From: Octopus bimaculoides
Taxonomy: Eukaryota
Assembly (NCBI RefSeq): GCF_001194135.2
Contig: NC_068988.1
Span: 21,079,432 to 21,143,431 of the forward strand
Reading direction: 5' to 3'
DNA length: 64,000 bases
The notes below the pieces were generated by a model. It had not been told where the DNA came from, made no database searches, and worked only from the letters and a program-made list of their open reading frames with translations. Position 1 is the first letter of the stretch, and every line of letters starts with the position of its first letter. Shown here piece after piece: positions 7,670 through 48,248 of this stretch. The position numbers and the translations under genes were made by a program.

Positions 7670-8913
7670 NNNNNNNNNNTTGAAAATGCAATTTTAAAGA
7701 TGTTTATTCACTTAGGATGGTGTGTGTATATGTGTGCGCATTTAACATCCCCCACCAACACACACACACACACACACACAAATGTGCACACATATACACA
7801 CACCATCCTACCAAATATAAAACACACACAGACCCATATACACAATAAACTCTTGGACCAATCAAAAACGGCCCACACACACAAACACAAGTATATACAC
7901 ACACACACACACACACTCACACCATTCTGACCTCTAAGACCAGTCCCATAAACCACTGAACCATGACAGACTAGCCCAGAAACAAAAAAAATCCTTTTAA
8001 TTCCACATTGCTCTTCCTTCTCACCCCCAACCAACCTCTGGCACTGTCCCTTAAAATAGCAAACATTCCTTAGCTACACACAAGACAGAAAAATTTCTCC
8101 AATTTTTTGTTAATTCTTAAATATGTCTCCTTCTGTGTATATACATACTACCAAACAAACATGGTTTATATTGAACTCCTAATACTTTTTGTTGAATACT
8201 TTCTTAAATACTTTCTTGTAAACTGTTTTTAACATTTTCTTATTATTATCAAAGAATGTATAACTGTATTTTAATACTTTTGTGACCACCAGTACTTAAC
8301 ACAACAAAGCTTATACAAAGCTAAGCATTTTACTTTTGATAATCTTTTTCTAAAAAAAGTGAAACCGGTCAAGTGAATAAACATCTTTAAAATTGCATTT
8401 TCACACCTTCTTTCATATATATTTCCACTTGTGCGGTATCTTACAACTTTACTTTGTTATATATATATATAGATAGATAGATAGATAGATGTGCATGTGT
8501 GCGTTTATCCTCCCACTGCTCCCACCACTTGACAATTGCTGTTGACTTGTTTATATCCCTATAATTTAGCAGTTCAGCAAATGTGACTGATAGCATACGT
8601 ACCAGGCTTTAAAAAAAAAAGGCTAAGTACTGGGGTCCATTTTTTTTTTTTNNNNNNNNNNCAAAACCATTCAAGGTGGTGCTCCAACATGGCCACAGAC
8701 CAATGACTGAAACAAGTAAAAGAAATGAAAGAAATCCAGTTCCCAAGATGCATTACTTGTTTTGTTGTTTTGTTTTGTTTTGTTTTTTTTTAACCAAAGG
8801 CATTCTTTTTAAGCCAGTCATTTACATTGAGTGATTAGTTTAGTGTGTCTCAAAGTTATTTTAGTGTATTTATTTTTTTTTACATGTCTTTTACGCAGTT
8901 GCTGTGAAAGAGT

Positions 8914-9117
8914 ATGGGCCAGAGACGCAGTAAATGTGCACCAGATCATTTGCAGAATTCTTCATCAGATAGTGACCTTGATACTGACACAGGTGCTTCA
9001 AGCAGTTCTCGGAAACAATCGAAATCCTCTCTTCCTTCCCCAACCGATAAAAAGATGTCTTTCTTCCGGAAGCAAAGTGATGAGGCAAAGCGGCGGTTTG
9101 AATATCAGATGCATTTA
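8914..9117 (+). CDS. LRSAM1: LRSAM1 coding exon 1 (MGQRRSKC...KKMSFFRKQSDEAKRRFEYQMHL)
   Basis: Acceptor ttacgcag ends 8898; in-frame upstream TGA at 8905; ATG 8914; second ATG 9055 matches the vertebrate start; donor GTGAGT at 9118. Confidence 0.92.
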
Positions 9118-12100
9118 GTGAGTATTTCTGACACATTGTTATTTTTACTTCTTTCACCTTTGACCTTGTAATCAGTGATGTTCGTTTAACTAATAGAATT
9201 AAAAGGTTTTGGTTTTCGTGCCTGTCTTCACTTATGGTCACGAACGTTGAGTAATGTCTGAAAGAGTATGATCATGAAGACAAGTGGCTGAATTAGGGTT
9301 CTTCCAAAGGATCTCTAGAGCAAAATTAGGGGTTTTCAAACTTTTTGACTTGCGGACCCCTTTATATTTCAGGCTTTACCTTAGGGAACCCCTTATAAAC
9401 GCTTATGAAATTTATACATAAATATTTGCTTAAAATAACATATATTTTTGCATTTATTTATTTAACAGTATTTAACAAATAGGTTTATTGTCAATTAAAA
9501 GATTTCGATTAAAAAACATATATAAAATCAAATTGCCCATAAAAAGTATTTGCTGTCTACAGACCTCTTGTCTTGTCCTTGCGGACCACAGTTTGAAAAC
9601 CCCTGCTCTAGAGCATGCTGCTATTGCTCCACATTGAAAAGTCATAGCTCCAATACGATGGACATGTGATTATAGTGCCATGGGTACGAATTGTATGACA
9701 GATTCTTCAAGGTGAGCCAACCAGCAACAGACATAAGGGTAGACCAAGAATGAGGTGTTGGGATACTAACCAGAGTCTCAGTTGGTCATCCTTTGGAAGC
9801 CAGCCAGAAGGTCTAATGACAGTTGCTTCTGACAGGACCCTATAGAGGAGATGCCTAAGGAATCTACTTCCATGACACCTTCAAGAATAGTGGGTAGGGA
9901 AGATGTATGGATTATTTGAATTTCATGTTGTTGTTTGAATTGTTAGTGTTGGAGAAAATATTTTGAGTATTTCTTTTGGTTCTTTATGATCTGAATCCAA
10001 ATTCCACTGAGGTCAATTTTGCCTATCATCCATTTGGCACTGATAAAATAAAGTACCAGTGAAATACTAGGGTTGAAGATATTGACTAACCCCACCCCTC
10101 AAAATTCCTGGCCTTGTGCCTAAATCAGAAACAAAGTTGGTGGGCTGACAAAATTGTACAAGATACTTTGCGTTGTTTGCTTTGGCTCTTTATATTGTGA
10201 GTTCAAATTCAGTTGCAGTCAACTGTGATCATTATTCTGTTGGGATTAATGAAATAAAGTGCCAGTCAAGTACTGGGGTTGATTGTATTTGCTACCCCTC
10301 ACCCTTCAATATTGCTGATCTTGCGCTTAAATAAGAAACTACCATGGTTATTATTTTGAAACTGAGGACTCTAAGATGCTGTGTAAGTTAGTAATAACAC
10401 ACCAGCCCATGCAGTGTCACAGAACTTTTGTCAGTGAATTGCGAGGGTCACAACAAACATATTGGCAATAACTAACTATTGATTTGTCATCACTTTTGGG
10501 GCACAGTATAAGCAGGTAATGTGTACCAAAGTAACCAGGAATGGCAAGTAATTGAATGAGGGCTAATGGACTGCTGAAGATTTCAGAACCATACCAGAAT
10601 GGTATCCCATCAAGGACACAGATGGAAAGAACATAGGAGTGGTGTTAGAGGCTTAGCTGAGGGTTTCTGTCCAGAAAAACTTGAAAAGCACATTTAAGGG
10701 TTTCTGCCCAAAAGAACTTGTAAAGTAGAGAGAGAGAGAGCAGGTGTCAGAGGGTTTTGTTTCAAAAGCACCACAACTAACGCTTCTGGTTGCAGCTTCA
10801 AAGATGGCCAAAAGACTTGTTTTGACATCAAAACCAGAATTTCAGTGACTGGGTGTCCTCTCTCCTGGCCACAACCAGTAATGCTACATCTTATTGAGAC
10901 CAGGAGGAGATTATGCAAAGTAAACTATTATAGCTTGGTAAACTACCTGGGACATTGCAAAGGGTAGAAAAAGGAAGAGGATTTTCCCATCTAAGAAGAA
11001 AAGCCAACTCTATGAGAAAGCATGCAAAACAGGCAAAGAAATGTTGACCCTGCCACCCCCGACCTGCAAATTAACAAAACCCTTTGCTCTGATAGACTCT
11101 CAATGAAAGAATTTGTTTAACCAATTGACACCTCTCTCTTGATTAGCTTTATTCATATTCTGACAGGTATATAAAATTAACAGAAACAAAAAAAATTATG
11201 GAACTTGTCTATAGAGAGATGAATTTGTTGAGAATTGAGTGAAGCAGTGATGGAATTTGAACTACTGTACTTTAAATTACTAAACCATCACAGCTGAGTT
11301 GATCTACTATGATTTTTATTGTAAGAAAGGAACACAAGCTGGTGGAATCATCCAAAGGGAAGCTGACAGAACCATTAGTGTGTTGGGCACAATGCCTGAT
11401 AGCATTTCTTCCAACTCTTTATGTCCTGAGTTCAAATTCTGTTGAGGCCAACTTTGCCTTTTATTCTTTCAAGGTCACTAAAATAAGTAGTAGTTGAACA
11501 CTAGAGTTGATTGTCCCCTTCTCCCAACTTTCAGGCCTTGTACCTATATTAGAAACAATTGTAAGAAAAGAAGATTGTTCCTCAATATTATTTTTTTTTT
11601 TTACACTGGCATAAACAAGTCCTGAAATTTCTACATTAGATTGACACAGTACTAAAATATCTTGTATTTATTTTATTGGCCATGGGTGCAGAAAAGCAAA
11701 ATTTGATTCCAAAAGGACTTGAACTCAGTACATAGGAGTAAGGGACTAAATTCTGTAAAGTGTTTAGTCTGATACTACACCCACTGTAATACTTGGTCAA
11801 GTTAAATATCAAAATGTATGTATATGTATTTAAATTTTTATAGGTGTTTGTAACCTGCAAATCTCTTCTTTTCATAGGCAGAAGATAATCCAGAACCTAT
11901 CTTTGATATTTCCAACAGTCAAATTAGTGAGGTAAAGGAAGATTTTCTTGTTATTGTCATTGCTTGAAAATGCCATTCCCTTCTTCTTGTGTCATTGCTG
12001 ATGTTAACTAACTTAGAATCAATCTGTATTTTGTGACCTTGAGCATATTTTCTTGTCAACAACTCATTGTTTAACTTGAATACTTAATACTTTGTGGTGT

Positions 12101-13050
12101 TTTTTTTTTCTACTACCACATGTGTGTGATTTACTATCAACAAATAAATTGTTATGTTTATAAAAAAAAAGATATTGCCTTCTGATATTTCTTACATCCT
12201 TGTAAACACTTATATCCGAAACCTTCTTACATACACACTATCCTAGCCAATGTGGTATTGTCTTTCTATTTTCTGACCTGTGACGATACACGTCTAACTG
12301 TAGAAACCAGGCCAAAGCAGACATTGGAATGAGGTGTAGTCCTCTGGTTCACCAGCTACCATTGAACTGTCCAACCCATGCTAGCATGGAAAACAGATGT
12401 TAAATGATGATGATAGTGATGATGATGACTCATTAGAATAGGTGCAGCACCAAACATTGAAACTCTATTGTCTTTGATACAATCTGTACTATGACAAGCT
12501 ACCAGTTATGTCGAAACACATTGAATTCCATGAAATACTTTGCCTGCTAAAATAACCACTGTTCTGCTCCAGTAAATAACTGACAGCATGAAAGAAAAAT
12601 GTTCAAACTATCACACACAGATCTCTAATATGATAAATCACTGCATGTAGCTGTACAAAATAAGATCTGCTGCCAGAAGAAAGCAATTTATCTGATCAGT
12701 TAACTTTGTTCTCTAGATATACTTGATATGAATCATTTTTCATCAATTTTTTTTTTTGGGGACTTCATGATGTACCTTAGACCAAACAAAAACTATTGAT
12801 AGTTTTTATATAGTAAACTTTATAAAAAAAAAAAAAACTATTTTAAAATTTAAAATTTAGCAAAAATGTTCAAAACTATCGCTTATCTTTACTTTGTTAA
12901 TTATAGACACAGGTATGATTGTGTGGTTAAGAAGCTTGCTTTCCAACCACATGGTTCTGGGTTCAGTCCTACTGCATGGCAGCTTGGGCAAGTGTCTTCT
13001 ATTATAGCTTTGTGAGTGGATTTGATAGAAGGAAACTGGAAGAAGTCTGC

Positions 13051-13098
<48 letters not shown>

Positions 13099-14556
13099 AA
13101 TACTAATAACATGAGGCTTTTGCCCAATGTCTGTTGTCCATGCTGGCGTGGGTTGGATGGTTTGACTGGGCTGGCACACTGGAAAGCTGCGCCAGACTCC
13201 AGTTTGATTTGACATGGTTTTCTACGGTTGGATGCCCTTCCTAATGCCAACCACTGCGAGAGTGTAATGGGTGTGTTTACGTGCCAATTTGCGTGACATC
13301 AGTATCTGCCACGACTGCGATTTTGCTTGGCTTCATGAGTCTTCTTCTCAAGCACGACATAATGCCAAATTGTCTATTGCCTCCGTGAGGCTCAACAAGG
13401 GAATGTTGGGCCTCACAGAAGCAATAACCCCCCAGCATGGACGCAGTCTAATGACTGAAACAAGTAAAAGATAAAAGATACTTGTGTGTAAAAAATTTTT
13501 GAATATTACATTTTTCAAGACATTCAAGTACAGATTTTTCTAAATCCTTAAATGATGTTTTTAAAAATCTAAATTATATCTATATACCCCTTGTGGCACA
13601 CTAATGCACCATGAGGCACCAACTGAAAACCACTGATGATTTGAAGTGGGTCTAAACGATAACATTAACCACATGATGGCACCACCGTTCGAGCATGATT
13701 GTTACCAGCGTCGCCTTCCTGGCACTTGTGTCGCAGCTTCGCCTTCTTGGCACTTGTGCCGCAGCTTTGCCTTCCTGGCACTTGTGCCACAGCTTCGCCT
13801 TCCTGGCACTTGTGCCGGTGGCACATGGAAAGTCATTCGAGCGAGGTCATTGCCAGTGCCGCTGGACTGGCTCCTGTGCAGGTGGCACATAAAATACACC
13901 ATTTTGAGCGTGGCCGTTGCCAGTACCGCCTGACTGGCCTTCGTGCCGGTGGCACGTAAAAGCACCCACTACACTCTCAGAGTGGTTGGCGTTAGGAAGG
14001 GCATCCAGCTGTAGAAACTCTGCCAAATCAGATTGGAACCTGGTGTAGCCATCTGGTTCGCCAGTCCTCAGTCAAATCGTCCAACCCATGCTAGCATGGA
14101 AAGCAAACGTTAAACAATAATGACTAATGTAAAAATGTGTAAGGCAATGTTCTAACATTTCTTAAGGCATACAGAAGTGTCAGATGTTGGGGAAATGGTA
14201 ACAAGTGAACTGACGAATATAGTAAACACCTTATTATCTGGCACCACTGAGATGGTGGTGATGATGATGATGATGATGATGGTAACTTCATTGCTGACAA
14301 TCATCCAGTTATTAATGTCACTTTGAGTTTACAGACAAAATATTTGTGCTGTTGTTGTTTTTGTTGCAGTGGCTTAGGCTGTTTATAATGACATTTCATG
14401 TTACAGTTGGTTGCTATGGTGACTACTAATATTAGCAGGAATTCAGTAGCAAAAAAAAAAAAAAAAAGAAAAAATCAATGTGAACAGAAATAAACATTAT
14501 CTGAATCGGAACAAGATGCTGATGATGGGTGATATTAATAAGGACAGTGATGATGA

Positions 14557-14588
<32 letters not shown>

Positions 14589-15254
14589 ATGGTAACTATG
14601 GCTTTGAGGATAATGGTGATGAGTATAGTTATGATGATGATGAAGATTATGTGCAAATATGTTGCTAGTGACAATAGGGATAACAGTAATGATGATAGGA
14701 AAAATGTGACAGCAACAATGGTTACCCCTCCTCCTCTTCTTCCTCTCCTCTTCTTTCTCCTTCCTTCTCTTTTTCATCCCTCCACCTCTTCGTCCTCCTC
14801 TTCCTCTTCCCCGCTTCTTTCTCCTTACTTCTCTTCTTCATCCCCTTCTCCTCCTCTTCTTCATCTCCTCTTTTTCTTTGTCCCTCCTCTTCTTCATCCC
14901 CTCTTTTTTGTTCCCTCCTATTCTTCTTTGTCCCCTTCTCCTCTTCTTCATCGTTTCCTCCTCTTCGTCTTCATACCCTCTTCTTCTTCATCTCCTCTTC
15001 TTCTTTGTCCCCTCCTCCTTGTCTTCGTCCCCTGTTTTTCACCCCCCCTCCCCTCTTCCTCCTCTTCTTTCTTCCCTTCCCCCTTTTCTTCCTCCTCCTC
15101 CTCACCATCCGACTTTGCCTTTCATCCTTTCAGGGTCGATAAATTAAATACCAGTTTCATACTGGGGTTGATCTAATCGACTGGCCCCCTCCCCAAGAAT
15201 TTCAGGCCTACTGCCTAGTGTAAAAAAAAAGAAAAAAATAGCAATGATAATAAT

Positions 15255-15291
<37 letters not shown>

Positions 15292-18200
15292 CATCATTCT
15301 GACTCTTACAACGTCTATTTCCAGATCCCTTCCAATGTGTTCTCTCTCTGTAAAGTCCTGAACAAAGAGGTAAGACATGATTTGATCAGCTTAAGGAAAT
15401 ATTGAGTAAAGTTGTTACTGTATTTGCTGTTGCTGTTCAGCTCAGACCAGCCTTGCTTTCAGCTGACCTATGACTAGGCCTTCAGCATTCAGCTTACTCT
15501 GTCAAACGTAATACTTATTTATTCCTGTTCTTTTTAATTAATTATATGATAATGAAATTACTCTGTATTGTGCTCGGGTGCACTACAATTCATCATTATC
15601 TTGCTTTGAGTGTCAGTTATAGATTAAATGAAAAGAAAAAAAACTTTATTGTATTGATGTATTTTCCAAGTTCTATTTAGATTTTTTAATTTTGTTTTTA
15701 CTTTCTAAAAGAATATTTTTTTATCACTTCAGATTTTGTTGCTTCATGATAATTGGTTAACTTCTCTAAAAGCTGGTGATTGTGGAATGAGTGATTTGGT
15801 AAAAATTCGGGTAAGTCATGCTTTCGTATCTTTTGTATATAATGTGTACGTGGAGAGATAGAGAGAGAGAGAGTGTGTGTGTGTATGTGTACTCTAGCTC
15901 TTGGCCTAGAGTTTCTGTGAATCCTACTGAATTTCTATACCTTCAATTTTTCAGTTTTAATAACTTGCAATTCTTGAGATGTACTATTCATAATCCATAT
16001 GAGTTAATTTTTAGTGTACAATACTTGGGATATAGTTTGTAGCTTAAGAAAACCATATTGTACTACTACTAAAAATAATATTAAAAGATATACAGTGTTG
16101 CCTTCCTGGCACTTGTGCCGGTGGCACGTGAAAAGACATTCGAGTGAGGTCGTTGCCAGTGCCGCCGGACTGACTCCTGTGCAGGTGGCACATAAAATAC
16201 ACCATTTTGAGCGTGGCCGTTACCAGTACTGCCTGACTGGCCTTCGTGCCGGTGGCACATGAAAGCACCCACTACACTCTTGGAGTGGTTGGCATTAGGA
16301 AGGGCATCCAGCTGTAGAAACTCTGCCAAATCAGATTGGAGCCTGGCGTAGCCATCTGGTTCACCAGTCCTCAGTCAAATCGTCCAACCCATGCTAGCAT
16401 GGAAAGCGGACGTTGAACGATGAACGATGATAACCGTGTATCTCCTTTACTCCATGACACCTATTATGACCCTGTATTCATACTCTAACTTCTCATCACC
16501 TGGCACAAAGCGACCTCCCTCAATACAATTCTGAGCCCAATTGAGCGGGTCTTGTCTTGTGAGTTACTTGGTGACCTCACTGGTGCTAGTGCCACCAGCA
16601 CAATGAAGTAGGGTTCAAGGAAACAAAACAAAAATAAAACACACACACACACACACACATTGCATCTATTTAATATCCAATGTGGGTACTTTGAAAATAC
16701 CCACCAGAGTCACAACCATGTCCTACATACTTATAGGCTGCCCTTTGGTATAACATAACACCCATTTAGCTATCCTGCCAAGGATACAGTGAAGTCACGG
16801 GACTGCAGTACTGCAGATTGTGAAGAGGAAGTGGAAGAGATAAACTGATTCATTCTTATATCAATGCTGAACAGAGGGATCCTAGGAGCTCAATGCTCAC
16901 AATCACCAAGCTCTATCGAGAGAGTAACTGCAGTGCTTATATAGCGGTGGCATCCACGGTTGTGTAATCAGCTAATGAAGGAGTCATTTGGACTCAAGCT
17001 CCCTATTCAAATAATGAAATTAGATGAATCGTGACAGAGAGTCATGGGAGTCTGTGCAAGCAGCTTGACTGGATAGATATCCAACACACTTCTACTACAC
17101 TTACCACTACTCAGCCTTATATGATGTGGGGTAGCCATGTATCTCTTCTATAGCAAGACACCTCTGTGTGTCCCTCTATTATATTTTAGTCTCTCAAACC
17201 TGGCATTCAGCCTCCTCCTCATTTCTAATACTCCCCCTCACTTAGTCATAGGCTCTTTTTCGTTTTCTATTCTTTTATTGTTTTGCAACTTAGTGACTTC
17301 ACTTGTGCTGGTGGCATGAAAACAGAGCACCCAGTACACATTGTAGGGTGGTTGACATTAGGAAGAGTATCCAACTGTAGAAAACATGCCAAAGCTTTCA
17401 TATTTCTGTATTGCCCACAAGGGGCTAAACATAGAGGGGACAAAGAGATTAAGTTGATTACATCAACCCCAGTGCATAACTGGTACTTAATTTATCGACC
17501 CCGAAAGGATGAAAGGCAAAGTCGACCTCGGCGGAATTTGAACTCAGACCGTAAAGACAGGCAAAATACCGCTAAGCATTTCGCTTGGCGTGCTAACATT
17601 TCTGCCAGCTCGCCACTTTCATTGAAGCTTGATATGGCCCTGTAGCACATCAGATCTTATCAAACTGTTCAACCCATGCCAACAGGGAAAGCAGACATCA
17701 AATGATGATGATGATTCTCTCCTGCCATCATCCATAACACCATGTAGTGATGCTTGCTCTCATGTGGTCTTTCACTCAACACTTTACTTCTGTCAACATC
17801 CTGACACACAAATAGAGAGATCTATTTCCTTGATGCTCATTCACTCATAACTAATTCTCTAACATTCCACAGTAACTACCCTGCATTCTGAAGGGAAAAA
17901 TTGTACATCCCTTTCTTTCGCTAACATGACAAGCTCTCAGAAAGTATGTACAACTCGGCAAATTATGTATTTAGCCAAGCATGTGTAAGTGAAGAGCTAC
18001 ATCTCCTATGTTTAAATTGTTGTTGTTTAGTCCCGAGTCAGTCCTGACCAAGTGGATCTATAGTCAAAAATATTCCAACAATAACCATCTATTTTATACA
18101 TTTATACATATATATCCTGCGAAATCGTGATGGCACCTGTGCCCAGCATCGCCTTCCTGGCACTTATGCCGGTGGCACGTGTAAAGACATTCGAGCGAGA

Positions 18201-21200
18201 TCGTTGCCAGTGCCGCTGGACTGGCTCCTGTGCAGGTGGCACGTAAAAAATACACCATTCTGAGCATGGCCGTTGCCAATACCGCCTGACTGGCCTTCAT
18301 GCCGGTGGCATGTAAAAGCACCCACTACACTCTCGGAGTGGTTGGCATTAGGAAGGGCATCCAGCTGTGGGAACTCTGCCAAATCAGATTGGAGCCTGGT
18401 GTAGCCATCTGGTTCACCAGTCCTCAGTCAAATTGTCCAACCCATGCTAGCATGGAAAGCGGACGTTAAACGATGATGATGATGATGATCCTTCACTACA
18501 ACGTTCCCTATTTTCTTCCTTTTTTGAAAAACAAGATAGCCGGATATAATTTGAGGGAATTTCTTTGCTATTTCAAACAGATTGAATGACCATGTAAAGG
18601 TTCTATCATTGATTTGAATGTATGTATATCTAATTGTTTATCTTCTTCACCATTTACTCCCAGGTACTTGATGCACACAATAATTCTATCAAACATCTAC
18701 CAGAAAATATTGACCAGGTTCGCAGCTTACAGGTAAATAGAAATGTTACTGTTGTCTTTTTAGGAATTCGAATGATTACATTATAATATTCTTTATGTTG
18801 CTGTTAAGCCCCAAGTGAACTGTGACAGAACAGACCTATAATCAAAAAGTATTCCAGCCGTGGCCATCCCATCCTTTTAGAGATATCTAATACTTCTTTA
18901 TCTAATGTGTTCATTAGATGGCAGGATGTAATTAAAAAGAGATTTGGCTGGTATTTCTAGCTTCTTGAGCAGCTGCATTTATCATAATAGTGTTATTGTA
19001 ATACAGGTTGGTTTACAAAATTGGCATTGTGCCATTTGAGAAATTTGTGTCATGCACACAAACTAAATCACGTAGAAGCTTTACTCAAATAGTTTGGTAT
19101 TCAAATGTAAGAGAGTATATTCAGCATTGTTCTAAAATAATTTTGGTATTAGTCCAAATGCATACAGGTGACAGTTTCAGTTGAATTGGACTTCAACAGC
19201 TCCAGTGCAATGAGGAACATGCATGCCATTTCTCATTCACATTATTTATGCTTTAGTTGATATCCAGGTTAAACCATCTGGTGGTATGGATTTAGCAAGT
19301 AGTTTTTACTGAAAACTATGTTACTCACCATAATCATCACAGGGATCAGGTTGAGCTTGCTTGGGTTCTCATGATTCTGATCCTCCACCCATCTCTTGTC
19401 TTCCATGATATATGGCAGTTTTTCTCAGTGACATCCTGTATCATCTGTAAACGAATTGACATACGTTTTTGCAAGGGGGTCATTGCATATATGACTATTT
19501 CGAAGTGTCCATTGGAAGTTCTTGACTTAGTAACTCCTCCTTATGTGTCCAGCACTGCTCAGCAAAGTCAGCTCTGTTTTTTCTAATGATGTTTGCTACT
19601 TTAAGAAGTTTATTGTATCTTCCCTTGGTGATGTTTTCTTTCCTAGGTACATTATAAATGGCACCATAGCTTGGCTCCCGGACCGATGGCATGTGAAAAG
19701 CACCATTCGAGTGTGATCGTTGCCAGCATTGCCTTACCGGCACATGTGCCGGTGGCACGTGAAAAACAACATTTGAGCATGGTCATTGCCAGTGCTGCTG
19801 AACTGGCTCCCTTGCAGGTAGCACGTAAAAAAACACCTTTTGAGTGTGGTTGTTGCCAGAACTGCCTGACTGGCCCTCATGCCGGTGACATATAAAAGCA
19901 TCCACTACACTCTCAGAGTGGTTGGTGTTAGGAAGGGCATCCAGCTGTAGAAACTTTGCCAGATCAGATTGAGCCTGGTGCAGCCTCTGGCTCACCAGTC
20001 TTCAATCAAACCGTCCAACCCATGCTAGTATGGAAAGCAGACGTTAAACGATGATGATGTAGTGTACATATGTAGGTGCCACCCCAACATAGTTTCGAAG
20101 CTTTTGGTTAGTGTTCAGATGAAAGAGCTAGAGATAAAGTGCAAAAGATTTTGGCTAGCCTATGGAACCCTCTGAGAAACAGTAGATACAGTAGTGATGT
20201 TCTACAAAACCACTTGAGCTAAAATGCACTCATCTGATGGGGCCACAGAATTTTCTAATAATATACTTATGGATGTTTTACAAAAAGACACCCTTGCACT
20301 TTTCTTTTTATTCTCTTAACTGTCCTCTGCAACTCAGTAGAATACAACAAAGAATATGGCTTTACCCTCACAAAATCAAGAAGCTCCAGATATCCAGCCT
20401 TCACAATAACAGATGCAGAATAAACATGCTGATGAATTAGTCTTAATGTGAGATACAAATGCTGAGGCTACTACCATACTTCACAGTCTGCAAGGTGTTG
20501 CAGTTGGCATTGGTTTGTGTGTTAGTGCTAGAAAAATGGCATTTATTTGGTACAACCTGGAAATTACGGTTGCCTCATTATCTGGAAACTTGATAAAATC
20601 AGCAATTTTTTTCATGTACTTAGTAGCTTAATTACAAAGGCAGAAATTAAGTTACTTATACATATTGGCTTCAAAATTTGGCAAGCTCAGTGGAGGGGTT
20701 AAGTCAATTACATTGACCCCCAATGTTCAACTGGTACTTATTTTATCAACCCTGAAAGGTTGGAAAGACAAAGTCAACCTCAACAGAATTTGAAATCAGA
20801 TCATAAATACTGACAAAATGCCACTGAGCATTTTTCCCAGCATGCTATAGATTCTGCCAGCTCATCACCTGAAGCTACATATACATAAAGCTAAAGTAGC
20901 ATTATATAGAAATCTAACTTGAAAGAAAATCTGCAAAAGAACTTCTGCTGTACAATGGTTGACTCTATTGCTTTGAGGCAGACCTGAACACACACCATAG
21001 AGCATTGAATTTTATTTATTTATTTGGTCTTGCTCTGAAATAATCTACTAAATCATATTTCTTTCTCATTCTCTTCTAGGTCTTAAATTTAGAAGGCAAC
21101 AAGTTGAAGAAAATCCCAGAGTCCATTGGAAATTTAAAGTTTTTACAGTCTTTAAATCTCAAAGGTAATTTTTCTTGTTGGTCGTTATTAATTTTTTTTG

Positions 21201-23162
21201 TTTTTGTTTTGTAATTATTAATATTTTCTTTGATTTATGTTGTTCATATACAGTAACTTGCACCAATGTACCTTATGCATATGTAAATACTATGCACAAA
21301 ACTCCAACTAATGAACACCTACCTCAGAAACAGCTGTAAAGAGTTTAACATAATATTACTTATTAAGAGTTTTAGAGAATACTATGTTGTGTGTTTGTAG
21401 ATGTGTACTCAAACATGGGTGTATGTATTTTTATGAATGTGTGTATTGTGTGATCTGATGAATATGCCTCTGAATATACTTACATGTGTGTGTGTTGTTG
21501 CATGAAACACTCTTTGTTTCATATGTTTATATAGATATCACTGCTATATATATGGATTTATTATTAAAACACAAATATACTATAGGTGCAGGAGTGGCTG
21601 TGTGGTAAGTAGCTTGCTTACCAACCACATAGTTCCGGGTTCAGTTCCACTGTGTGGCACCTTGGGCAGGTGTCTCCTACTATAGCCTCAGGCCGACCAA
21701 AGCCTTGTAAGTAGATTTAGTAGGCAGAAACTGAAAGAAGCCCGTCGTATATATGTATGTATGTTTGTGTGTGTGTGTGTGTGTGTCCAACATTGCTTGA
21801 CAAACGATGCTGGTGTGTTTATGTCCCCGTAACTTAGCGGTTCGGCAAAAGAGACTGATAGAATAAGTACTAGGCTTACAAATAATAAGTCCTGGGGTTG
21901 ATTTGCTCGACTAAAGGCGGTGCTCCAGCATGGCCACAGTCAAATGACTGAAACAAGTAAAAGTAAAAAAAAAGTAAAACAAATTCGTAAATGTAATTTT
22001 AACAGAATATTTCCATACACATTCTTTTTTATGTGATACATTTTTTTTTTAAGATGGCAGGGTGTGATTTGTGAGAAATTTAATTAGTGTCTCTAGCATT
22101 GCTAAGTCTTTAGGCTCGTTGCTAAGTTAGTTGTTAGCATCTGTATTGATTATATTCTATGTTGTATTGATGATGATGGTGATGTATGTTCTGCTGGCTA
22201 GGTCAGTGGTTCTAACAAATGCATGTTTTCTTATGTATTGCAGGAAATAAATTAAAAGAAATCCCCACCAGTCTCAGCAATTTATCGTCCCTCCGAACTC
22301 TTGACCTCTCCAACAACCAATTAACTAATCTGCCAACTGAATTGTGGAAATTGCGTGCTTTAGAGAACTTGCTTGTGGATGCTGCAAATATGGTTCATCC
22401 ACCTGCAGGTGAGACATCAACTACATCCTTTTAGGGTCAATGAAATAAGAACCGGCCTAATGTTGAGATTGATTTCATTTACTGATTGTTTCCAGAAAAT
22501 ACATTACCTTATGCATCGTTAGAAAATAATCACCATTATCATTATCATCATTGTCATTGTTATCATCAGCACCACCACCAGCTTCTTTTCTTCTTCTTCT
22601 TCTCATTGTTATTGAGTGAGAGAGCAGTGCATACCATCAAAGTGAAACTGGGGTAAAATATACGAAGCCCAGTATATCCATCATGACTACCCGTCTGATA
22701 AGGGTGCACTAGGCACATGCATCACAACCATATGTACGCGACATGGCGATCTCATATCAAGATTAACAGCGCATGACCTTGCAGATGGGGCCCAGTTAGA
22801 ATTATCTTCAGATTGAGTAGCCCATCCCTTTCAAAAGGTCCCTGAATAAGGNNNNNNNNNNNNNNNNNNNNNNNNNNNNNNNNNNNNNNNNNNNNNNNNN
22901 NNNNNNNNNNNNNNNNNNNNNNNNNNNNNNNNNNNNCCCCACTACTTCTGCTCGTGATCAGAGATGCACATATGATCAACCACCAAGGGACATTTCTCAA
23001 CTGGTTACGGTCAAACAACTGACAAGCAAATCTGTGGTATTGAGCAGAATATTTGCTGTAGCCCATCTTTTATACCAAGACAAAGCAATGTACATGATAA
23101 CACTTCCAATCAGTTAAGATGAGAAGCCATGAAAGCCATTGCCTGGTACTGCATCAGAGCAT

Positions 23163-23221
<59 letters not shown>

Positions 23222-25277
23222 TTTATTAAGGCAGTGAGCTTGTAGAATCATTAGCATGCCAGGCAAAATGCTTAGTGGCATTCCATCTTAATGTTCTGAG
23301 TTCAAATTCCATGGAGGTTGACTTTGCCTTTCATCTTTTCAGGCTCGATGAAATAAGTACCAGTTATGCACTGGGCTTGATGTAATTGACTAGTCTCCTC
23401 CCTCCATATTTCAAGTCTTGTGCCTATAGTAGAAAGGACTATTATTATTATCATTATTATTATTTCATTTTACAGAGGTTTGTTCCCAAGGTACTGAAGC
23501 AATTATGAAATTCCTTTGCTCAGGTGAGACTAATCTTCAATTTGTTTTTTCCCCCCCCATTTTCTTTTTCCAAATTTCAGTTTATAATTTCAAATAAAGA
23601 ATTGAAATAGACAAGGAGATGCAATGTCACAGCCCACCTCCTGGATCATTAATAGTAAATTCTCTTATCATGCAAACAAAGATTTGGACTCTTTCTACTG
23701 TTTTCAATACTAGTTTATAATTAATTTTGTTAGCATTTGCTATTAGAGAGCAACAGTGTCATAATTATCTTAACCCATTACCTCCCATAATTCTATTAAC
23801 TGGAATTTTTTTTATGAAACTTTGATTTCTAGCATAAAACAGCCTTAGAAACACGCTGGAATGATCAAAATAACATTTCAAAATAACATTTTAAATAGAA
23901 ATAAGCGAGATATTGGGTGAAAAATTAGCAAACCTCATTTGAATATCAGAGAAATCTACTTAGTAGATATAGCAAAAAGGTTAGATATGTGTAAATATTG
24001 ACAGATAATTACGAAATTTGTAATTTTTAAGTGATCTCATATGAGATCATTGGTAGGTAATGGATTAATAAGATGAGTGGTTAACATGTGAGAGACTGTT
24101 TGTAGAAGTGGTCATAGTTACCAGAATGATTTTGGAAAGAAACAACAGGATTAACTGCAAAATAGATGCCACTGTCACTATGAGAGCAACTGCTAGCCGA
24201 AAAGGTGCCCTTTAAATGTCATGTATATGGCCTAGGTCAGGGGTTTTCAAACTGTGGTCCGCGGACCACAGGGGGTCCGTAAGGACAAGACAGGGGGTCC
24301 GTGGACAGCAAATACTTTTTATGGGCAATTTGATTTTATATATGTTTTTTAATTGAAATCTTTTAATTGACAATAAACCTATTCTGTTAAATACTGTTAA
24401 ATAAATAAATGTAAAAATATATGTTATTTTAAGCAAATATTTATGTATAAATTTCATAAGCCTGAAATATAAAGGGGTCTGCAAGTCAAAAAGTTTGAAA
24501 ACCCCTGATATAGAGATATGTATTGCTTAATCTTTTTGATACCAACAGATCACCTCATGGTTCTATGATACAAACTTTTTAAGTGGTATAAATTAGAGCC
24601 TTCAAAATTTCATGTTAATTTATGTTCCAAACACCAATGACAAGGTAGTTTACTAAATTCTTCATTATTTTCAAAATTAATTGAAACAAATTCAGTGTAT
24701 TAAAAGGGTTGAAGTGAGTGTATCTATTCCTCTTGAAATATTATTTAACCGAATCTGTTATTTCCAATTTCATCAGAATCTGGAGAAGAATACATACCTC
24801 CATCACAGTTTCTACTCCAAGTGTTGGATTCCTCAGAAAAGAAACACCAAATGTCCAGTACATTTAGTGACCATTCTGTAAAACTTTTACAAGAAGATGC
24901 ATTGATGATGGTCAGTATTTAAGTTCTCTTGATTTCTGTGTGCGTGTATTATAAATGTATATGGGTATATATGAGCATATTTTAAAACAAAAAATGCAAA
25001 TATTTAAAAAAAAATTACAAAGCAAAGACACAAACTGACGCCTTTGAACAAAAATACCGTTTGCGCTTTTGTTTTGCCCGAGTTACATAGCCAATCCTTG
25101 TTACTTTTGTGGTATGTTGTAAATTCAGAGAAGCAGTGATTGATCCACTGTAAACATGTACCCAACAATGGTTTTGTTCTCAAAATGCAATATAAAATAT
25201 ATAAATAATTCACACATACATTATTTACATTTGACGGATATTTGTCCTCATCTTGTTTGCTGTTAACACAACGTTAA

Positions 25278-25329
<52 letters not shown>

Positions 25330-28300
25330 TACATTGAAAAATACGTTAGGAATGAGAAACCAGGTTTGAAATTTTCCCAAGGCACCTGATGAAGGCTGGA
25401 GGGTATATCAACCAAAACGTTGTGTTAACAGCAAACAAATTAAGGACAAATATCTGTCAAATGTAAATAATGTACATAATTCCTCATCTCTTAAATATAG
25501 AATTGTAATACACACATACTCATACATACACCTCTCTCTCTATTTTCCATTTTCCTCATCTGTTTGTCAAAATTCAACATCTGAATATACTTTCTGTATA
25601 TTATACATATGTTTTGTGTTTGTGTTAAGCTGAGGCATAAATCAGTTTGTAAAAAAATATATATTTTAAGTACCATTGAGTAGCACCACGTTTCTGCACT
25701 AGATTCTTCAACTCAATTTCATTTCTCAGTCTTTTAATATTTCACTTCATATGTGAATTTCTTAACAACACAGCCATTTCTATACTCTGTCTAGTCACCA
25801 ATTTATATTTTTTTCTTATCATAAATGGTCTAGCTGCTAATGCTGTCTCCCCATTTTGCATTGGATTAATAAATGTTGATCATTTATTAACTTTGACGTA
25901 TATTTTTTTGTGTCAAACTCATAATATTAGTAGAGACTTGTTCCATCTTTCTGACATTGTTTGAATTCATCTCATTCTGTGGTTTCTTTTACTTACAGCA
26001 AGATATTGAGAAATACGCTAACTTACAGGTGAGTAAAACGTTACTTCTATTTGTATTATTTACGAGCCACTGATAACTGAATCACTTACTGAATGACAAG
26101 CTGATGTCAGTGGGTGGGTTTGGTCATCTACATGATGACTAGACATGGTAGATATGGCAGATAAATCTCTCACTCTCAAGTCACACATCATATTGTTTGA
26201 AAAAGGAAGGACACTTTAGATAATGTAGTATCTAAGAGCAAAGGTGGGCACTGTTAATTGAAAGCTTAACTTTGTTAACCATTAAACCATTAACCAAAAA
26301 GTGAACTTCGATAACTGTTAACCAGTTAATTCTTTAAAAATGTAACAGAAGTTATCGATAAATGGTTAACATTAATTTTTATTATAGAAAAAAACAAAAA
26401 ATCAGTTTTTGCTCTAAAACCACCTAAAAACACCTTTTAAAAGTGCCAAAACTATAAAATCAGCCTTTTTTGGTCTTTTTAAGAGCTTCAGAACTCAAAA
26501 ACTATAGTTTTGTTTTGTCTTAGAGTTAAAAATGCTGATTTTATAGTTTTAACTTTTAAAAGACCTAAAAAAAGGCTAATTTCATAGTTTGGGCCCTTTT
26601 TAAGGTTTTTAAATGCTTTTAGAGCCAGAAAAGGGTAAAAAAAGAAACTCAAATGCAACGCTATTAGTATTAAACTAAAAAAGTTTATTGATAAAGTGGC
26701 CATAAAATTTTTTTGTTTTTAAATGAAAAACATGATATATACATAATTTAATTTTTCGTCTTCTCATTCTCCATTTTGTTCATGAGATGCATGTTTCTCT
26801 TCATGAAAATTACCATGTCAAAGTTTTTCATCAGACAGGGATGATCTCTTGACCCTCAAGATGTCCTTGCCCACAGAGAACAAATGCTCCACTGCAGCAC
26901 AGGAGGGGTTGGCTATGTTAAACTTGATGAACAAGTCCACTAACACTTGCTCACCCATGAAAACAGCATCTGTCAGGAAGCCCTTGGAGTTGGTCTCCAA
27001 CCAGGTCTTGATCAGATTCTGGGCCTTGTCCTTGAGTGACCTGTGGCTCCTGCTGCTCTCTTTTGGCTGGGTGACACCATTGAAGAAATTTCCTCCTCCT
27101 CTTCATTGTTGCTGCCTCCACTGTTGCTGCTCACTTCATCAGACTGCTCCTTCATGGCCTCCTCGATCTTACCCTCCGTGTTTAGTGAACTTGGTGTTGT
27201 CATATTTATCCAACCAGATGAGACGAAACCTGGGTTGGAAGGCAGCAGCCAGCTGGCATTCCTCATCCCTCAGGAGGGTCCTAAACCTTTTGTCAAGAGT
27301 AGGTTGACCAAGGGGCTGCAGTAGACAAGGCCCTTGGACTTCAAGTCCTTGAGCCTAAAGATCGTCGCAGCAACTTGCGTTAACAGAAACTAAATGTAAT
27401 GGAAGTTAACTAGTCTGATAATGATTTCCAAAGTCAACTTAAAAGTTATATCGTTAACGAAAATGTTAACTTCATTAATTAATGATTAATGGATTAATGG
27501 TTTGGTACCCAGGTTTGTCAGAGATACCACAATATCTGAAAATAAGACAGAATAAGCCTAACTTGAGTGCTTTTGACTAGAGGACTGCTTGATCAGGGCT
27601 GACCTGGGATTGAACAACAACAACAACTTATTGATTGAGTCATAGGGAGCTGCTGTATATTTGCTTAACCAGCTCGATATAGCAGCCAATGCTTCTTTGA
27701 TAAATATCTTATAATCTTATATCATTATAATGTGGGTGAATGTTAGAATTACATAAATACACGTATTGTGTTTATTAAATGATATTTATCTCTTACCAAA
27801 TGGAGTACTTTTTTTGTTGATCTTACCATCACGGAACAATACATTATAAAGTAATAACCTTATAATGTGCACTTCAAAGGTCCTCTACAGTTATTGGCTA
27901 CCATATGCTACCTTACAGCAGGCGTACTCCTTTTACTGGATACACATGTGGAAATCTGTTAGTGTACACAGAATTCATACAAAAAAATTATAAAACAAGA
28001 AGATGAAATGAACAGTCTTTAACCCAGACCTACATCAAAGTACCTATCTATAGTCATCTAGTCCTCTCTTGTGTACAACTATTGAATATGTTCAATAAAT
28101 TTTGCTATTTTGTGAAAGGCCAAACACTAAAAATAACATTGGTCAATTTTCTATTTGCCACAGGAAAAGAAACGTCAAGAACGAATGGCATTTAACCGCC
28201 AGTATGAGGAGGACGAGAAGAAATTTGCCAAGATGGCAGCTTCAGCACTAAAAGAGAAAGACCATTTAGTATCAACTATTGCACAAGTAGGTCTCATTTG

Positions 28301-28556
28301 TCCTTAACATTTCTTAAATGGTCATTCTTTTATTCTTTTTACTCATTTCAGTCATTTGACTGCAACCATGCTAGAGCATTGCCTTGAAGGGCTTTTTTTT
28401 TTTAGTTGAACAAATTGACCCCAGAACTTATTTTTTTAAAGCCTAGTACTTATTCTATCAGTCTCTTTTGCTGAACTGCTAAGTTAGAGGGACATAAACA
28501 CACCAACGCCAGTTGTCAAGCGCTGATGGAGGAACAAACACAGACACAAAGACAAT

Positions 28557-28610
<54 letters not shown>

Positions 28611-31600
28611 TGATGATATATGACAGGCTTTTTTCAGTTTCCACTCTTGAGGCTTTGATTGGCCCAAGCCTGTAGTAGAAGATACTTGCCCAAGGTGCCA
28701 CACAGTGGGACTGAACCTAGAATCATGTGGTTGGGAAGCAAATTTCTTACCACACAGCCACACCTGCATCATTCATTTAATTTTTCATCTAATTGCATAT
28801 GTACAGTCTAGGCAACTGTACATATACAGATATGTGCTTCATCATCATCATCATCATCATTTAAGGTCTGTTTTTCATGCTGGCATGAGTTGGATGGTTT
28901 AACAAAGGCTGGCTAAGCAGAAGACTGCACCAGGTTTCACTGTCTTTTTTAGCAGGATTTTTACAGCTGGATACCCTTCCCAATACCAACCACCTTACAA
29001 AGTGGACTTTTTATCACATCCACTTACAAGGCTTTCGTTGACCCAGAACTGTAATAGAAGACACTTGTCCAAGGTGCCTTGCAGTGGGTCTAAACCTGGA
29101 ACCACATGGTTGTAAAACAGTCCAACTTGAATTATGTCACCGTATGACAAATCAATGAAGTCCGTGTTATGTATTTTTCAGAAAATTCAAAGCTTTCTTT
29201 ATCACTTTCTCCTCCTTCAAGGAACAGATTAAACTTAATGAAGACCTGGCAGAACTCAGCAACAAAAAGGAACTTGACCGGCAGAATTTGGTCACGTGTC
29301 TAGAGGACAGTAAGTTGGTTTATTGAATTAACCTTGATGGACCCTTACCTTCACCCTAAATTTGTCACTGCATTTGTTGCTAACTCTCACTTTATTTATT
29401 GCATCTTTGTACATAGCTTGTACAACCCTCACAAACCATTTGTCAACACGAGCTTCTTGAGTGACCACCAAATTACTGAATACAGTACAATGTCAAATGC
29501 TTTCACCAAGTCAACAAATTCCAGGAATGGTAGATTACTTTCAGCCGAGTATTTCTCCTCCTGCTGCCTCACTGGAAAGATTGCATCCTTGGTAGTTCTT
29601 TCACACATGAAGCTAAACTGCATCTCTTTTTTGTCACAGATCAATTGTGCTATGACTCGCTCTCTACATGACCATTATAATCTCATGTAGTATTTTGATT
29701 TCCCTATAATTTCCTCTTTCTAACACATCCCCTTTGCCTTTGTAGCAGTTTATGATGATTCTGCAGGTTTGTAAATGTTTTCCGCAGAGCTTGGTGAAGA
29801 CATTTCATAGAAAACTTTGTGAGAGAAAAACTTATTTACTGTTTTGCCATTATTATTGTATATACTCAGTGGAAGCGCAATGGCCCAGTGGTTAAGGCAG
29901 CGGACTCGCGGTCAGAGGATCGCAGTTTCGATTCCCAGACCGGGCGTTGTGAGTGCTTATTGAGCGAAAACAGCTAAAGCTCCACGAGGCTCCGTCAGGG
30001 GATGGTGGCGAACCCTGCTGTACTCTTTCACCACAACTTTCTCTCACTCTAACTTCCTGTTTCTGTTGTGCCTGAAATTCAAAGGGTCAGCCTTGTCACG
30101 CTGAATATCCCCGAGAACTACGTTAAGGGTACACGTGTCTGTGGAATGCTCAGCCACTTGCACGTTAATTTCACGAGCAGGCTGTTCCGTTGATCAGATC
30201 AACTNNNNNNNNNNGCGTTGTGAGTGCTTATTGAGCGAAAACAGCTAAAGCTCCACGAGGCTCCGTCAGGGGATGGTGGCGAACCCTGCTGTACTCTTTC
30301 ACCACAACTTTCTCTCACTCTAACTTCCTGTTTCTGTTGTGCCTGAAATTCAAAGGGTCAGCCTTGTCACGCTGAATATCCCCGAGAACTACGTTAAGGG
30401 TACACGTGTCTGTGGAATGCTCAGCCACTTGCACGTTAATTTCACGAGCAGGCTGTTCCGTTGATCAGATCAACTGGAACCCTCAACGTCGTAAGCGATG
30501 GAGTGCCAACAACAACAACAATTGTATATACTCAATGTTATTGTATACACTGTCAAAGACTATCAGGTGTTACTGTTTCTATGTTGTCATTTAAAAACCT
30601 GTTGTATTCCAGTTGAGGAAAGGACCAACAGGCTGCTCAATGACCTCATGCAAATGAATGAAAAAGCCAGAAAACAAGAGGAATTAATGGAAGCCATTGA
30701 GAAAGAGAAGTAAGTAGTTTGCTCTATTTAATCTTATATTTCATTGTCTCATGTGGTTTTCTTCTTAACACACAGTATTTATCAGAAGGTCTGTGGTGGA
30801 AGAAGAGAGGTTTGTCTATGTATATGCGTGTGTGTGTGTGTTTTATCTGCTTATCTGTGTTTATGTGTCTATCTACCTGTATTTGTATTTGTCTGTCAAC
30901 GTGTAAGTGTATCTGTGTGTCTATGTATGTCTATATGTCAATGTGTAAGTGTATCTGTGTGTCTATGTATGTCTATATGTCAATGTGTATCTGTCAGTGT
31001 ATGTGTTTAGNNNNNNNNNNNNNNNNNNNNNNNNNNNNNNNNNNNNNNNNNNNNNNNNNNNNNNNNNNNNNNNNNNNNNNNNNNNNNNNNNNNNNNNNNN
31101 NNNNNNNNNNNNNNNNNNNNCGTGTAAGTGTATCTGTGTGTCTATGTATGTCTATATGTCAATGTGTAAGTGTATCTGTGTGTCTATGTATGTCTATATG
31201 TCAATGTGTATCTGTCAGTGTATGTGTTTAGACATTGCATAATACTCAGACACATGGCATATCATTTTTATACCATATGTTTCTGAACCTCTGCTATCTA
31301 TGTTTAAGAAATATCATGAATTTGAAGCCGATACGGTATGGAGATTGCAGGCTCTGGTTGACAGTGGACCTTAACCCTTTAACATTTAAACTGGCCATAT
31401 CTGATCCTAATATTCTACTTGTTATATGTTCAGACTGGCCAGATCCAACCTCTTACACCTACCCTACAATGTCATTCTAAAAATAAATAATCTCATCATT
31501 GAAATCCCAAAGTCATGAGATATGCATGATTAATTGAAAACAATGTGAGTAAATATGCATTAGATTCGTCAGAGTAATCTGAATGCTAAAGGCTCAAACT

Positions 31601-34600: not shown

Positions 34601-35283
34601 CACTAGAAAAGTAAATATTCCTGAATTTTACCTGTCATTTAATTTTGGATGTTGTTATTCCGTATTCTCAGCCCTGACTGAACTAGAAAAACTGTGGCTA
34701 TTCATTGTTATACCTGTAAAGTCAACCCGCCATTCACTACCTGTAAAGTCAACCCGCCATTCACTGCCAATTCTTTTATGTTGTTGTGTTTTAATAAAGA
34801 TTTATTCCTGTTTCTTTTTTTTTTTACCCAGAGAGATGAATTCCACTGTGTTGAATGATATCTTGCAATCAAAGTCAGCAGAACAGGATGAAATGGTCAA
34901 AGTTCTTACTCAGCAGGTTTGTTGTGGTATTTCTTCCGACAACTCTATATTAGCCAGTCTCATGATCTAGTATATAAAACACTTTTTTTTGTCTTTGATT
35001 CTGGAGATGTCTTTGAAGTAACCACTTGATACGGTCATCTTGGATTTGTAGGGGCTGAGGTCAAAATAATGTTTCAAGTAAATGTAGATAAGGAGGGGAT
35101 GCTTTACAATAGTATTTATGAATGGGGAATTTTTTTCTCTGGAAGTAAGCATCCAACCCTTATCTTGATGAGGGTTGTATTTGTAGAGTTTCAAATGGGT
35201 ACCCAATTGACGGGAGTAAGTTCAGGTAAGATTTCTGGAATTGAATTATGTTTTGTGTCCGACATATGAGAAATGATGAGAAA

Positions 35284-35314
<31 letters not shown>

Positions 35315-46665: not shown

Positions 46666-46680
46666 TCAACCAAGAGCCTC
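46666..46680 (-). CDS. POLE3: Candidate POLE3 distal terminal exon (EALG*)
   Basis: Strong acceptor (T)n-CTCGTAG ending 46681; phase 0, matching the GAG|GTAAGA donor at 48063. Confidence 0.5.
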   Translation of the reverse strand, partial: EALG

Positions 46681-48039
46681 CTACGAGAAAAAAAAAAAAC
46701 ATTTACTTGAGGAAAAAATGTATTCCAAAGGAGGTTTGTTACATCTATAAATCGTCTTAGTTTTCTACTCGGTAGCAGTTAACAGAAATGGTTTTCCACC
46801 TGACGTCTTTCATTTCTACAGATATTAAGAATCATTCAAGAGAATAAACTTAGGAAAAACTTTGTAATTGACTTCTTTAAAATGTTCAGAAAATAAATTC
46901 TATTATCCATAATAATAAAAAGTTTACCAGTTATTTTTTTTTAATTGTTTGAGTTATTTTTTTTTTTTTTGAAGAGTCCGAGTTTTGATCAAGCCAACAA
47001 ACTGGAACAGGCCACCAAGTCAAGTCTGTGATCCACTTGGGTTCAAAAGCTTATTACTACAAATATCAATAGTATTGTGCTTAGTCCTGAAGAAAGCAGT
47101 GGCACTATTACCATAAATTTTGGTTTATACAACTATATATGAGTCATTGTAGTCTGTAAGTGAGAGAGATAAATCTAACCACCTCAGCTAATTCAATTAT
47201 GAAATTCTCTTGAGATATTCTAGAACAAATGATGCTAATTATTTTATTTGCTAGGAATATATACAGGAAGTGAATCAAACATGCTTCTAGTTTTTAGCTG
47301 TTGCTGTACCATAACCCTGTCAGCTGTTCAAATTAAATATCAACTTTCACATTCTTAGCAGCCTAATGCCTGCAAAAGTCATGGCCCCCACCTCTTCACA
47401 CCGAACTAGAATTAAAATTTTTTTTACATGAAATAATGTTTTATTGTGTCAGGTATAATACACAATGTAAAATTAGTTTTATGCCAATTATTGTTTCTTA
47501 ATATGTATTGTCACACCACATGCTACTGAACAGAACATTTAGACCAAATTAAGACTCCCAGATATTCCAAAGACCTACCAAATATTAATTTTGTTACACA
47601 CTATCTTAGTAGATTTATTACTATGGTGCAATAGTTCCATGACATTCCTTGTACTGCAGAGAAAAAACTAACACCTTACCAGTAACAAAAGATGTAAAAA
47701 TGAATTGCATCCTAATGCCAACAGCCTTCAGCAAGTGGCATGTTGTACTACACCTGGTGTCAATAACAAAGAAAAGCTGTTCTCAGGGATTTTTCATTGC
47801 CAATGAATGCTCACTGAGCTGGAGCTGAAATTCACAGCTCAGATCACAAAACCAGCAACTAATGCAGCATGGTTCACTCTGGTACTAAAACTACTTTTGA
47901 GAAGTAGTGTTCACCCTGCAAAACTGGAACTACAAGTATCTCAAGTGCTGCATCTTTCCATGCATGCCCTACACATGGCAAAAGATTCTTGGCATAGATA
48001 TCCATCAGATCAAATACACAATCCAATCCTAAATCAAGG

Positions 48040-48248
48040 TCATTTTCCAACAATAAATCTTACCTCATCATCTGTTTCAATATAGTCTTCATCTTTAGAG
48101 TCCAGTTCTTCTTCCTCCATACTTCCATCTTCTTCTTCATCCTCATTCTCATCACCTTCCTCTTCATCATCTATCACAATAGTCTCCTCTTTAGCTTTCC
48201 TCCTCTTCTCAGAGGCTTCCTTCTTTCCTTGTTGTTCTCTGCGGAATG
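48040..48248 (-). CDS. POLE3: POLE3 coding exon 4 ([18 protein letters not shown]...acidic tail...DDE, then VRFIVGK* if unspliced)
   Basis: tttgcag acceptor; human AYRREQKGKKEASEQKKK; internal donor at 48063. Confidence 0.92.

Follow-up and report, generated by a model that had tools for sequence, protein, structure and literature searches.

The LRSAM1 gene of Octopus bimaculoides raises the question of where its protein begins and what its first residues do. In a window of 64,000 nucleotides (the whole stretch of DNA that was analysed), the methionine equivalent to the vertebrate start is preceded by an in-frame extension with a putative N-myristoyltransferase (NMT) recognition sequence. In this study, the extension, 8914-9054, was judged likely to be the true N-terminus of LRSAM1, predicted to be myristoylated and membrane-tethered and probably ancestral in bilaterians.

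The window corresponded to O. bimaculoides chromosome CM046608.1 (GCA_001194135.2), with 100% identity across 42,687 bp. A tblastn of the window with human LRSAM1 as query revealed LRR, coiled-coil, SAM, PTAP and RING exons on the plus strand, up to approximately 45600. When the concatenated exon translations were used as query, LRSAM1 orthologues were retrieved, and the best match was O. bimaculoides LRSAM1 (P0001, 774 aa). Pfam analysis of P0001, which is identical to the window, assigned LRR (PF23598/PF13855), SAM (PF00536/PF07647) and RING (PF13920, zf-C3HC4_3) domains. The PTAP motif sits between SAM and RING, and its residues P695, A697 and P698 were at least 90% conserved in the orthologue alignment A1. 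The octopus gene is an LRSAM1 orthologue in which LRR, coiled coils, SAM, RING and P(T/S)AP are all present. No exon encoding AEDNPEPIFDISNSQISE was found in the window. Intron 1 contains a CT-rich low-complexity tandem array with periods of 17-77 (14529-15176 and 14728-15103), which gives a spurious 215-aa ORF and lies shortly before the next detected LRSAM1 exon (15322-15372). The downstream neighbour of LRSAM1, on the minus strand at 46666-48600 (40753-42687 in L004), encodes a histone-fold protein (PF00808 CBFD_NFYB_HMF and PF00125). Elsewhere in the window, large ORFs and tandem repeats were dismissed as artefacts of low complexity or of gaps.

Table 1. Positions of the LRSAM1 features in the window.
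Feature	Position	Strand	Basis or remark
LRSAM1 coding region, 774 aa (LRR, coiled coils, SAM, PTAP, RING)	8914..45600	+	tblastn; gene range of L004 maps exactly there
5' UTR end within the first coding exon, last 15 nt	8899..8913	+	sequence; Argonauta comparison
In-frame TGA, 9 nt before ATG 8914	8905-8907	+	sequence
First LRSAM1 coding exon, CDS	8914-9117	+	translation, orthologue comparison
47-codon N-terminal extension (M1-K47)	8914..9054	+	identical to RefSeq XP_014774266.1
Predicted N-myristoylation motif GQRRSKC, codons 2-8 (Gly2, Gln3, Ser6, Lys7; basic R4, R5, K7; Cys8)	8917..8937	+	
Acidic Ser-rich cluster S16-D25 (SSSDSDLDTD)	8959..8988	+	three S-x-x-D (CK2-type) sites
Conserved N-terminal core M48-L68 (MSFFRKQSDEAKRRFEYQMHL)	9055..9117	+	equivalent to chordate residues 1-24 (human MPLFFRK...YQMCL)
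Splice donor GTGAGT, opening a phase-0 intron	9118..9123	+	intron position common to Bilateria
Predicted PTAP late-domain motif, TSG101-UEV binding type	44066..44077	+	sequence; P-[TS]-A-P in orthologue alignment

The earlier note had described an in-frame ATG 47 codons before MSFFRK, in a strong context and behind an upstream stop, and each of these features was confirmed. The start codon occupies 8914-8916; position -3 (8911) is A, and position +4 (8917) is the G that opens a glycine codon (ATG GGC, 8914-8919). The extension reads MGQRRSKCAPDHLQNSSSDSDLDTDTGASSSSRKQSKSSLPSPTDKK; it is directly followed by M48-SFFRKQSDEAKRRFEYQMHL, encoded by 9055-9117, and the translation of 8899-9117 is LL-stop-KS-MGQRRSKCAPDHLQNSSSDSDLDTDTGASSSSRKQSKSSLPSPTDKK-MSFFRKQSDEAKRRFEYQMHL. 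A 3' splice acceptor (ttttacgcag, a pyrimidine tract and then cag) is predicted to end at 8898, so that an internal exon would begin 15 nt before ATG 8914. The exon holds three ATGs, at 8914 (frame 0), 8934 (frame +2) and 9055 (frame 0). That at 8934 has a weak context and opens a 12-codon ORF, and that at 9055 has A at -3 and T at +4. By alignment, Met48 (9055, MSFFRK) is the vertebrate-equivalent start, and its column was at least 90% conserved in A1.

Several lines of evidence argue that the extension is real coding sequence. O. bimaculoides P0001 starts with exactly these 47 residues, which are already part of the RefSeq model, and the four RefSeq accessions of this species give a single long LRSAM1 protein. 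In O. vulgaris/sinensis the extension differs by one residue (H12R). Spliced Logan mRNA contigs from two decapodiform cephalopods (L001-L003, L005-L008) carried an uninterrupted CDS of 770 or 777 codons starting MGQNRSKC or MGQHRSKC, with A-3/G+4 at the ATG and an in-frame TGA at -9, as in octopus; one of these contigs included 650 nt of 5' UTR. The Argonauta equivalent reads ctgcag followed directly by CTGTGAAAGAGT-ATG. Neither frameshifts nor stops were found in the extension of O. vulgaris/sinensis, Argonauta or the decapodiforms; indels between cephalopods comprised 1 and 3 codons and were always in frame. Moreover, Nei-Gojobori estimates of dN/dS were 0.19 for the extension and 0.04 for the core of the exon between Octopus and Argonauta, and 0.27 for the extension and 0.077 for the remaining 725 codons between the two decapodiforms. 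Codons 2-8 showed synonymous changes between cephalopods and 0-1 non-synonymous changes. Dependence on the conservation of the extension and its Gly2 in relatives had been built into the earlier note; the values of 0.19-0.27 indicate purifying selection on the extension, which stayed in frame among cephalopods, and Gly2 was kept in all extension-bearing lineages. Judged from these sequence comparisons, the extension is translated, with a constraint that is clear but weaker than that on the folded body.

DNA similarity between Octopus and Argonauta was limited to 8901-9124, so that only the exon is conserved, and neither a promoter nor a 5' UTR exon further upstream was located. This search was limited by N gaps near the first exon. 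At 8653-8662, approximately 250 bp upstream of the first coding exon, the assembly has a gap of 10 N bordered by poly-T; the window has 526 N in total, with further N runs near 1480-1780, 31000 and 50550. In one decapodiform species, contigs with different 5' UTRs converged 14-16 nt before the ATG, a pattern that agrees with the predicted acceptor (8898) and with the use of alternative promoters or non-coding first exons. In this species, L005 and L006/L008 encode an identical protein behind 5' UTRs that are unrelated over the first ~130 nt, and the four transcript accessions with one protein in O. bimaculoides match the same alternative-first-exon pattern.

The first residues of the extension resemble an NMT substrate. 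GQRRSK matches PROSITE PS00008, G-{EDRKHPFYW}-x(2)-[STAGCN]-{P}, at the N-terminus, and R4, R5 and K7 bring a charge of +3 within 8 residues. For 28 extension-bearing lineages aligned from the N-terminus, per-position entropy was calculated. Gly2 was present in all 28 (0 bits). Position 6 was Ser in 21 and Gly in 5 (26/28, 1.1 bits), the exceptions being Val in one sequence and Asp in one, and position 7 was Lys in 19 and Arg in 3 (22/28, 1.6 bits). Position 3 (2.1 bits) was restricted to Q, S, H, V, A or T, and many bivalve orthologues carry His3 and fail the old PS00008 pattern. Positions 4, 5 and 8-11 varied freely, at about 3-3.7 bits. Structures of NMT have revealed pockets for residues 3-6 and a salt bridge between Lys7 and Asp471 (PMC7048800); conservation at positions 2, 3, 6 and 7, with 4, 5 and 8 onwards free, thus matches what NMT reads. 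The NMT-type start proposed in the earlier note (Gly2, Ser6, Lys7) was thereby borne out as a set of selectively conserved positions across the 28 lineages that also fits PS00008. Cys8, which might serve as a further membrane anchor, is conserved in cephalopods, and elsewhere only one bivalve sequence (P0168) has it. Insect LRSAM1 has Cys3 next to Gly2, and the other phyla lack a Cys. A Gly2-Cys3 start is the classical signature of dual acylation. The motif pattern, which recurs across phyla and is under purifying selection in cephalopods, is, on this comparative evidence, far beyond chance, and octopus LRSAM1 is predicted to be an NMT substrate with a textbook motif.

The distribution of the extension was surveyed with the N-termini of 120 orthologues, further distant representatives and an exhaustive HMMER search. 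The 68-aa exon peptide and the first 150 aa, when used as queries in word-indexed searches, returned almost no matches although the identical RefSeq protein was indexed, because the word index covers such a low-complexity sequence too sparsely. Cephalopods begin with MGQ[RNH]RSKC, and an MG start was present in about 20 bivalve genera, from Solemya to oysters, scallops, mussels, clams and unionids. It was also found in the chiton Liolophura (MGTNASK), nemerteans (MGSSPS), a barnacle (MGSNVSK), three hemichordates (MGSKPSR and others) and a brittle star. Mosquitoes, a skipper butterfly and a hoverfly begin with MGC; these three insect lineages, found in a later search, are additional to the 28. 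Among annelids, Ridgeia has an MG start and Capitella has MG after a probable mis-called start. In Capitella, the priapulid Priapulus and Logan contig L009, MG is internal to the annotated model and depends on the ATG used. L009 (100-120), a mollusc-like Logan transcript, has a called start at MSEIL followed by MGARSGK, and both of its ATGs have a poor -3 context. No MG extension was found in vertebrates, amphioxus and a tunicate, in corals and a jellyfish among cnidarians, in Schistosoma, krill and starfish, or in most gastropods. The statement of the earlier note that human LRSAM1 starts MPLFFRK without such a motif agrees with mammalian and reptile orthologues, which begin MPLFFRK and have no extension. 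In heterobranch gastropods (P0313, P0322, P0043, P0054, P0087), LRSAM1 carries an extension of ~25 residues without an MG start, in which the core motif recurs (MSFFRKKKK... or MPLFGKKKK..., then MPLFRRQ). This hydrophobic and polybasic start is similar to that of vertebrates (MPLFFRKRK) and may itself be a weak membrane-binding element that took the place of the lipid anchor.

The exon structure suggests a common history. In Ptychodera, Ostrea, Amphibalanus, Argonauta and Octopus alike, the first coding exon began with MG and had an in-frame stop 3-24 nt upstream. The extension and the conserved core shared one exon in four of the five species, the barnacle Amphibalanus being the exception. 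The phase-0 intron lay at an identical position in all five (after ...Y.M.L/V, before A.E.PEP), and vertebrate exon-skipping isoforms have the same exon boundary (...EYQMCL/IP...). The shared MG-start exon and intron position favor one ancestral exon with several losses, whereas the extensions of different phyla cannot be aligned past ~7 residues, which leaves room for repeated independent gain. Either history implies selection for the motif. MG-start LRSAM1 was most likely the ancestral bilaterian state and was most likely lost in chordates, most gastropods and starfish; since MG first exons occur across protostomes and ambulacrarians, the chordate condition would be the derived one. The MG-start first exon is specific neither to octopus nor to cephalopods and is the sole N-terminus in the O. 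bimaculoides RefSeq models. The earlier note had envisaged a lipid-anchored isoform, and this reading was partly supported: the NMT-type motif is present, a disordered hydrophilic linker follows it and chordate LRSAM1 lacks the extension, but the MG-start form is not a special isoform.

Behind the motif, the extension is predicted to be flexible. An AlphaFold2 run on a 45-sequence alignment gave residues 1-50 a pLDDT of about 33 (<50) without secondary structure. Confidence exceeded 80 from about residue 51, where a helix (56-71) caps the LRR and leads into the solenoid; the LRR, long helices, SAM helices and RING were visible in the model. The extension is, according to this model, a flexible disordered tether, as expected behind a lipid anchor. 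Ser makes up about 28% of its residues, and the three S-x-x-D sites that had been pointed out earlier were confirmed as S16/D19, S18/D21 and S20/D23. The extensions of cephalopods and bivalves have similar Ser/Asp/Glu clusters at a corresponding position, although their sequences do not align.

These features can be combined into a proposed mechanism. Translation would begin at the strong ATG 8914, methionine aminopeptidase would take off Met1, and NMT would add myristate co-translationally to Gly2, reading Gln3, Ser6 and Lys7. A single myristate needs a second membrane contact, which might be provided by Arg4, Arg5 and Lys7 and possibly by a palmitoylated Cys8. The remaining ~40 residues would form a disordered, Ser-rich and partly acidic tether that keeps the folded body (LRR, coiled coil, SAM, PTAP and RING) on the cytosolic side of a membrane, near ESCRT-I/TSG101. 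Membrane binding may be tuned electrostatically by the S16-D25 cluster, which may be phosphorylated and thereby regulated, and by the basic residues ahead of Met48. We infer the lipid attachment, the membrane location and the role of Cys8 from the primary structure. In the literature, no paper was found that links LRSAM1 to its own myristoylation, and the papers containing both words were unrelated.

Other readings of the extension must be weighed against this one. The annotation could be an artefact, with the real start at 9055 as in vertebrates and 8914-9054 a 5' UTR left open by chance, and a stretch of just 47 codons with low complexity lends itself to such a view. Nevertheless, the indels are in frame, dN/dS is well below 1, the start context and upstream stop are conserved, the sequence recurs in the same exon across phyla, and a scanning ribosome would reach the strong ATG 8914 first. 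We regard this reading as having almost no chance of being correct, and the open 5' UTR was rejected on the selection data. It is somewhat more conceivable, and still very improbable, that the extension is translated and not lipidated, with Gly2 kept for the Kozak G at +4, as an N-terminal glycine degron or for acetylation, and with the tail serving as a phospho-regulated disordered region. The tail is indeed rich in Ser and CK2-type sites, and a G at +4 favors initiation and biases residue 2 to Gly, Ala, Asp, Glu or Val. However, such a bias cannot give Gly in 28 of 28 lineages and none of the other four residues in any. Nor does it explain the joint constraint at positions 3, 6 and 7 with 4, 5 and 8 onwards free, which matches the NMT pockets, and insect orthologues carry Gly2-Cys3. 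A Kozak-only explanation of Gly2 was rejected on this position-specific conservation across the 28 lineages.

A different alternative concerns the number of products. The gene might yield an anchored form from the MG start and a soluble, vertebrate-like form from Met48 (9055), by leaky scanning, re-initiation or transcripts that start within or downstream of the extension. The junction Met is kept in almost all extension-bearing orthologues though not needed as a start, and the Met48 ATG has A at -3 in four of four cephalopods. RefSeq models of the chiton Liolophura sinensis start at MG (X1/X3, P0319/P0121) or at the internal Met (X2, P0049), and long and short N-termini also occur in Physella and Biomphalaria. 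The long form in the latter two begins not with MG but with MSFFRKKK..., which copies the core motif, and the short forms in all three are separate transcript models. The soluble isoform by leaky scanning that the earlier note had suggested found no support in octopus. Leaky scanning calls for a weak context at the first AUG and no AUG between the two starts, but the first ATG is strong (A-3/G+4) in all four cephalopods, and all four have an intervening out-of-frame ATG at +20 (8934), which arises from the Lys7-Cys8 codons AAA TGT. Furthermore, both starts lie in one exon and therefore cannot be separated by alternative splicing; all four O. bimaculoides RefSeq accessions represent one long protein, the Met may be kept for the hydrophobic M-P/S-L/F-F motif before the LRR cap helix, and the barnacle lacks a junction Met. 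A dual-product gene was consequently considered unlikely, and the single MG-start, predicted myristoylated protein is the preferred reading.

To our knowledge, LRSAM1 has been studied in mammals only, in connection with ESCRT/TSG101, the ubiquitin coat on cytosolic bacteria and Charcot-Marie-Tooth 2P. The mammalian protein is treated as soluble. If invertebrate LRSAM1 is lipid-anchored, the ligase would have begun as a membrane-tethered E3 beside ESCRT-I, like MGRN1, and a G2A mutation would be a simple handle on where it must be. We tentatively extend this to a wider proposal, which is possible and clearly more speculative than the prediction itself. Myristoylation would be the ancestral bilaterian membrane hold of LRSAM1, lost in chordates, and the vertebrate form would be derived, soluble and recruited by other means; the Ser/acidic cluster and internal Met would give a switchable anchored/soluble pair in invertebrates. 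With a conserved internal Met in place, an N-terminal targeting signal may have been lost cleanly more than once. The protein sequence is already in public databases and myristoylated RING E3s are a known class; what appears to be new is that LRSAM1 is predicted to join this short list as an added candidate, with an anchor that looks ancestral and lost in chordates. The idea is a prediction and mechanistically unsurprising, yet it lends itself to simple tests and puts a disease-linked ligase in a new light.

Vertebrate LRSAM1 (TAL/RIFLE) is an E3 that ubiquitinates TSG101, acts in antibacterial autophagy and is mutated in CMT2P. The octopus protein shares with it the order of LRR, coiled coil, SAM, P(T/S)AP and RING, the N-terminal core (MSFFRK...EYQMHL in octopus, MPLFFRK...EYQMCL in vertebrates) and the position of the first intron. 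It differs in its 47 extra residues headed by the NMT motif, whereas vertebrate, amphioxus and tunicate LRSAM1 start at the core Met without Gly2 or an extension. Src-family SH4 N-termini combine myristate with basic residues or Cys palmitoylation, and ZNRF1/ZNRF2 are myristoylated E3s. These proteins resemble octopus LRSAM1 in an M-G-x-x-x-S-K start, in basic residues and/or Cys and in a disordered linker, but their Cys lies at positions 3-6 rather than at Cys8 and their downstream domains are different. MGRN1 (Mahogunin RING finger 1) is an N-myristoylated, membrane-tethered RING E3 that binds and ubiquitinates TSG101 via P(S/T)AP (PMC13161197). A myristoylated RING E3 acting on TSG101 is the very logic proposed here for octopus LRSAM1, although MGRN1 is unrelated outside the RING, has no LRR or SAM, and is described as myristoylated in the literature, whereas myristoylation of the octopus protein is predicted.
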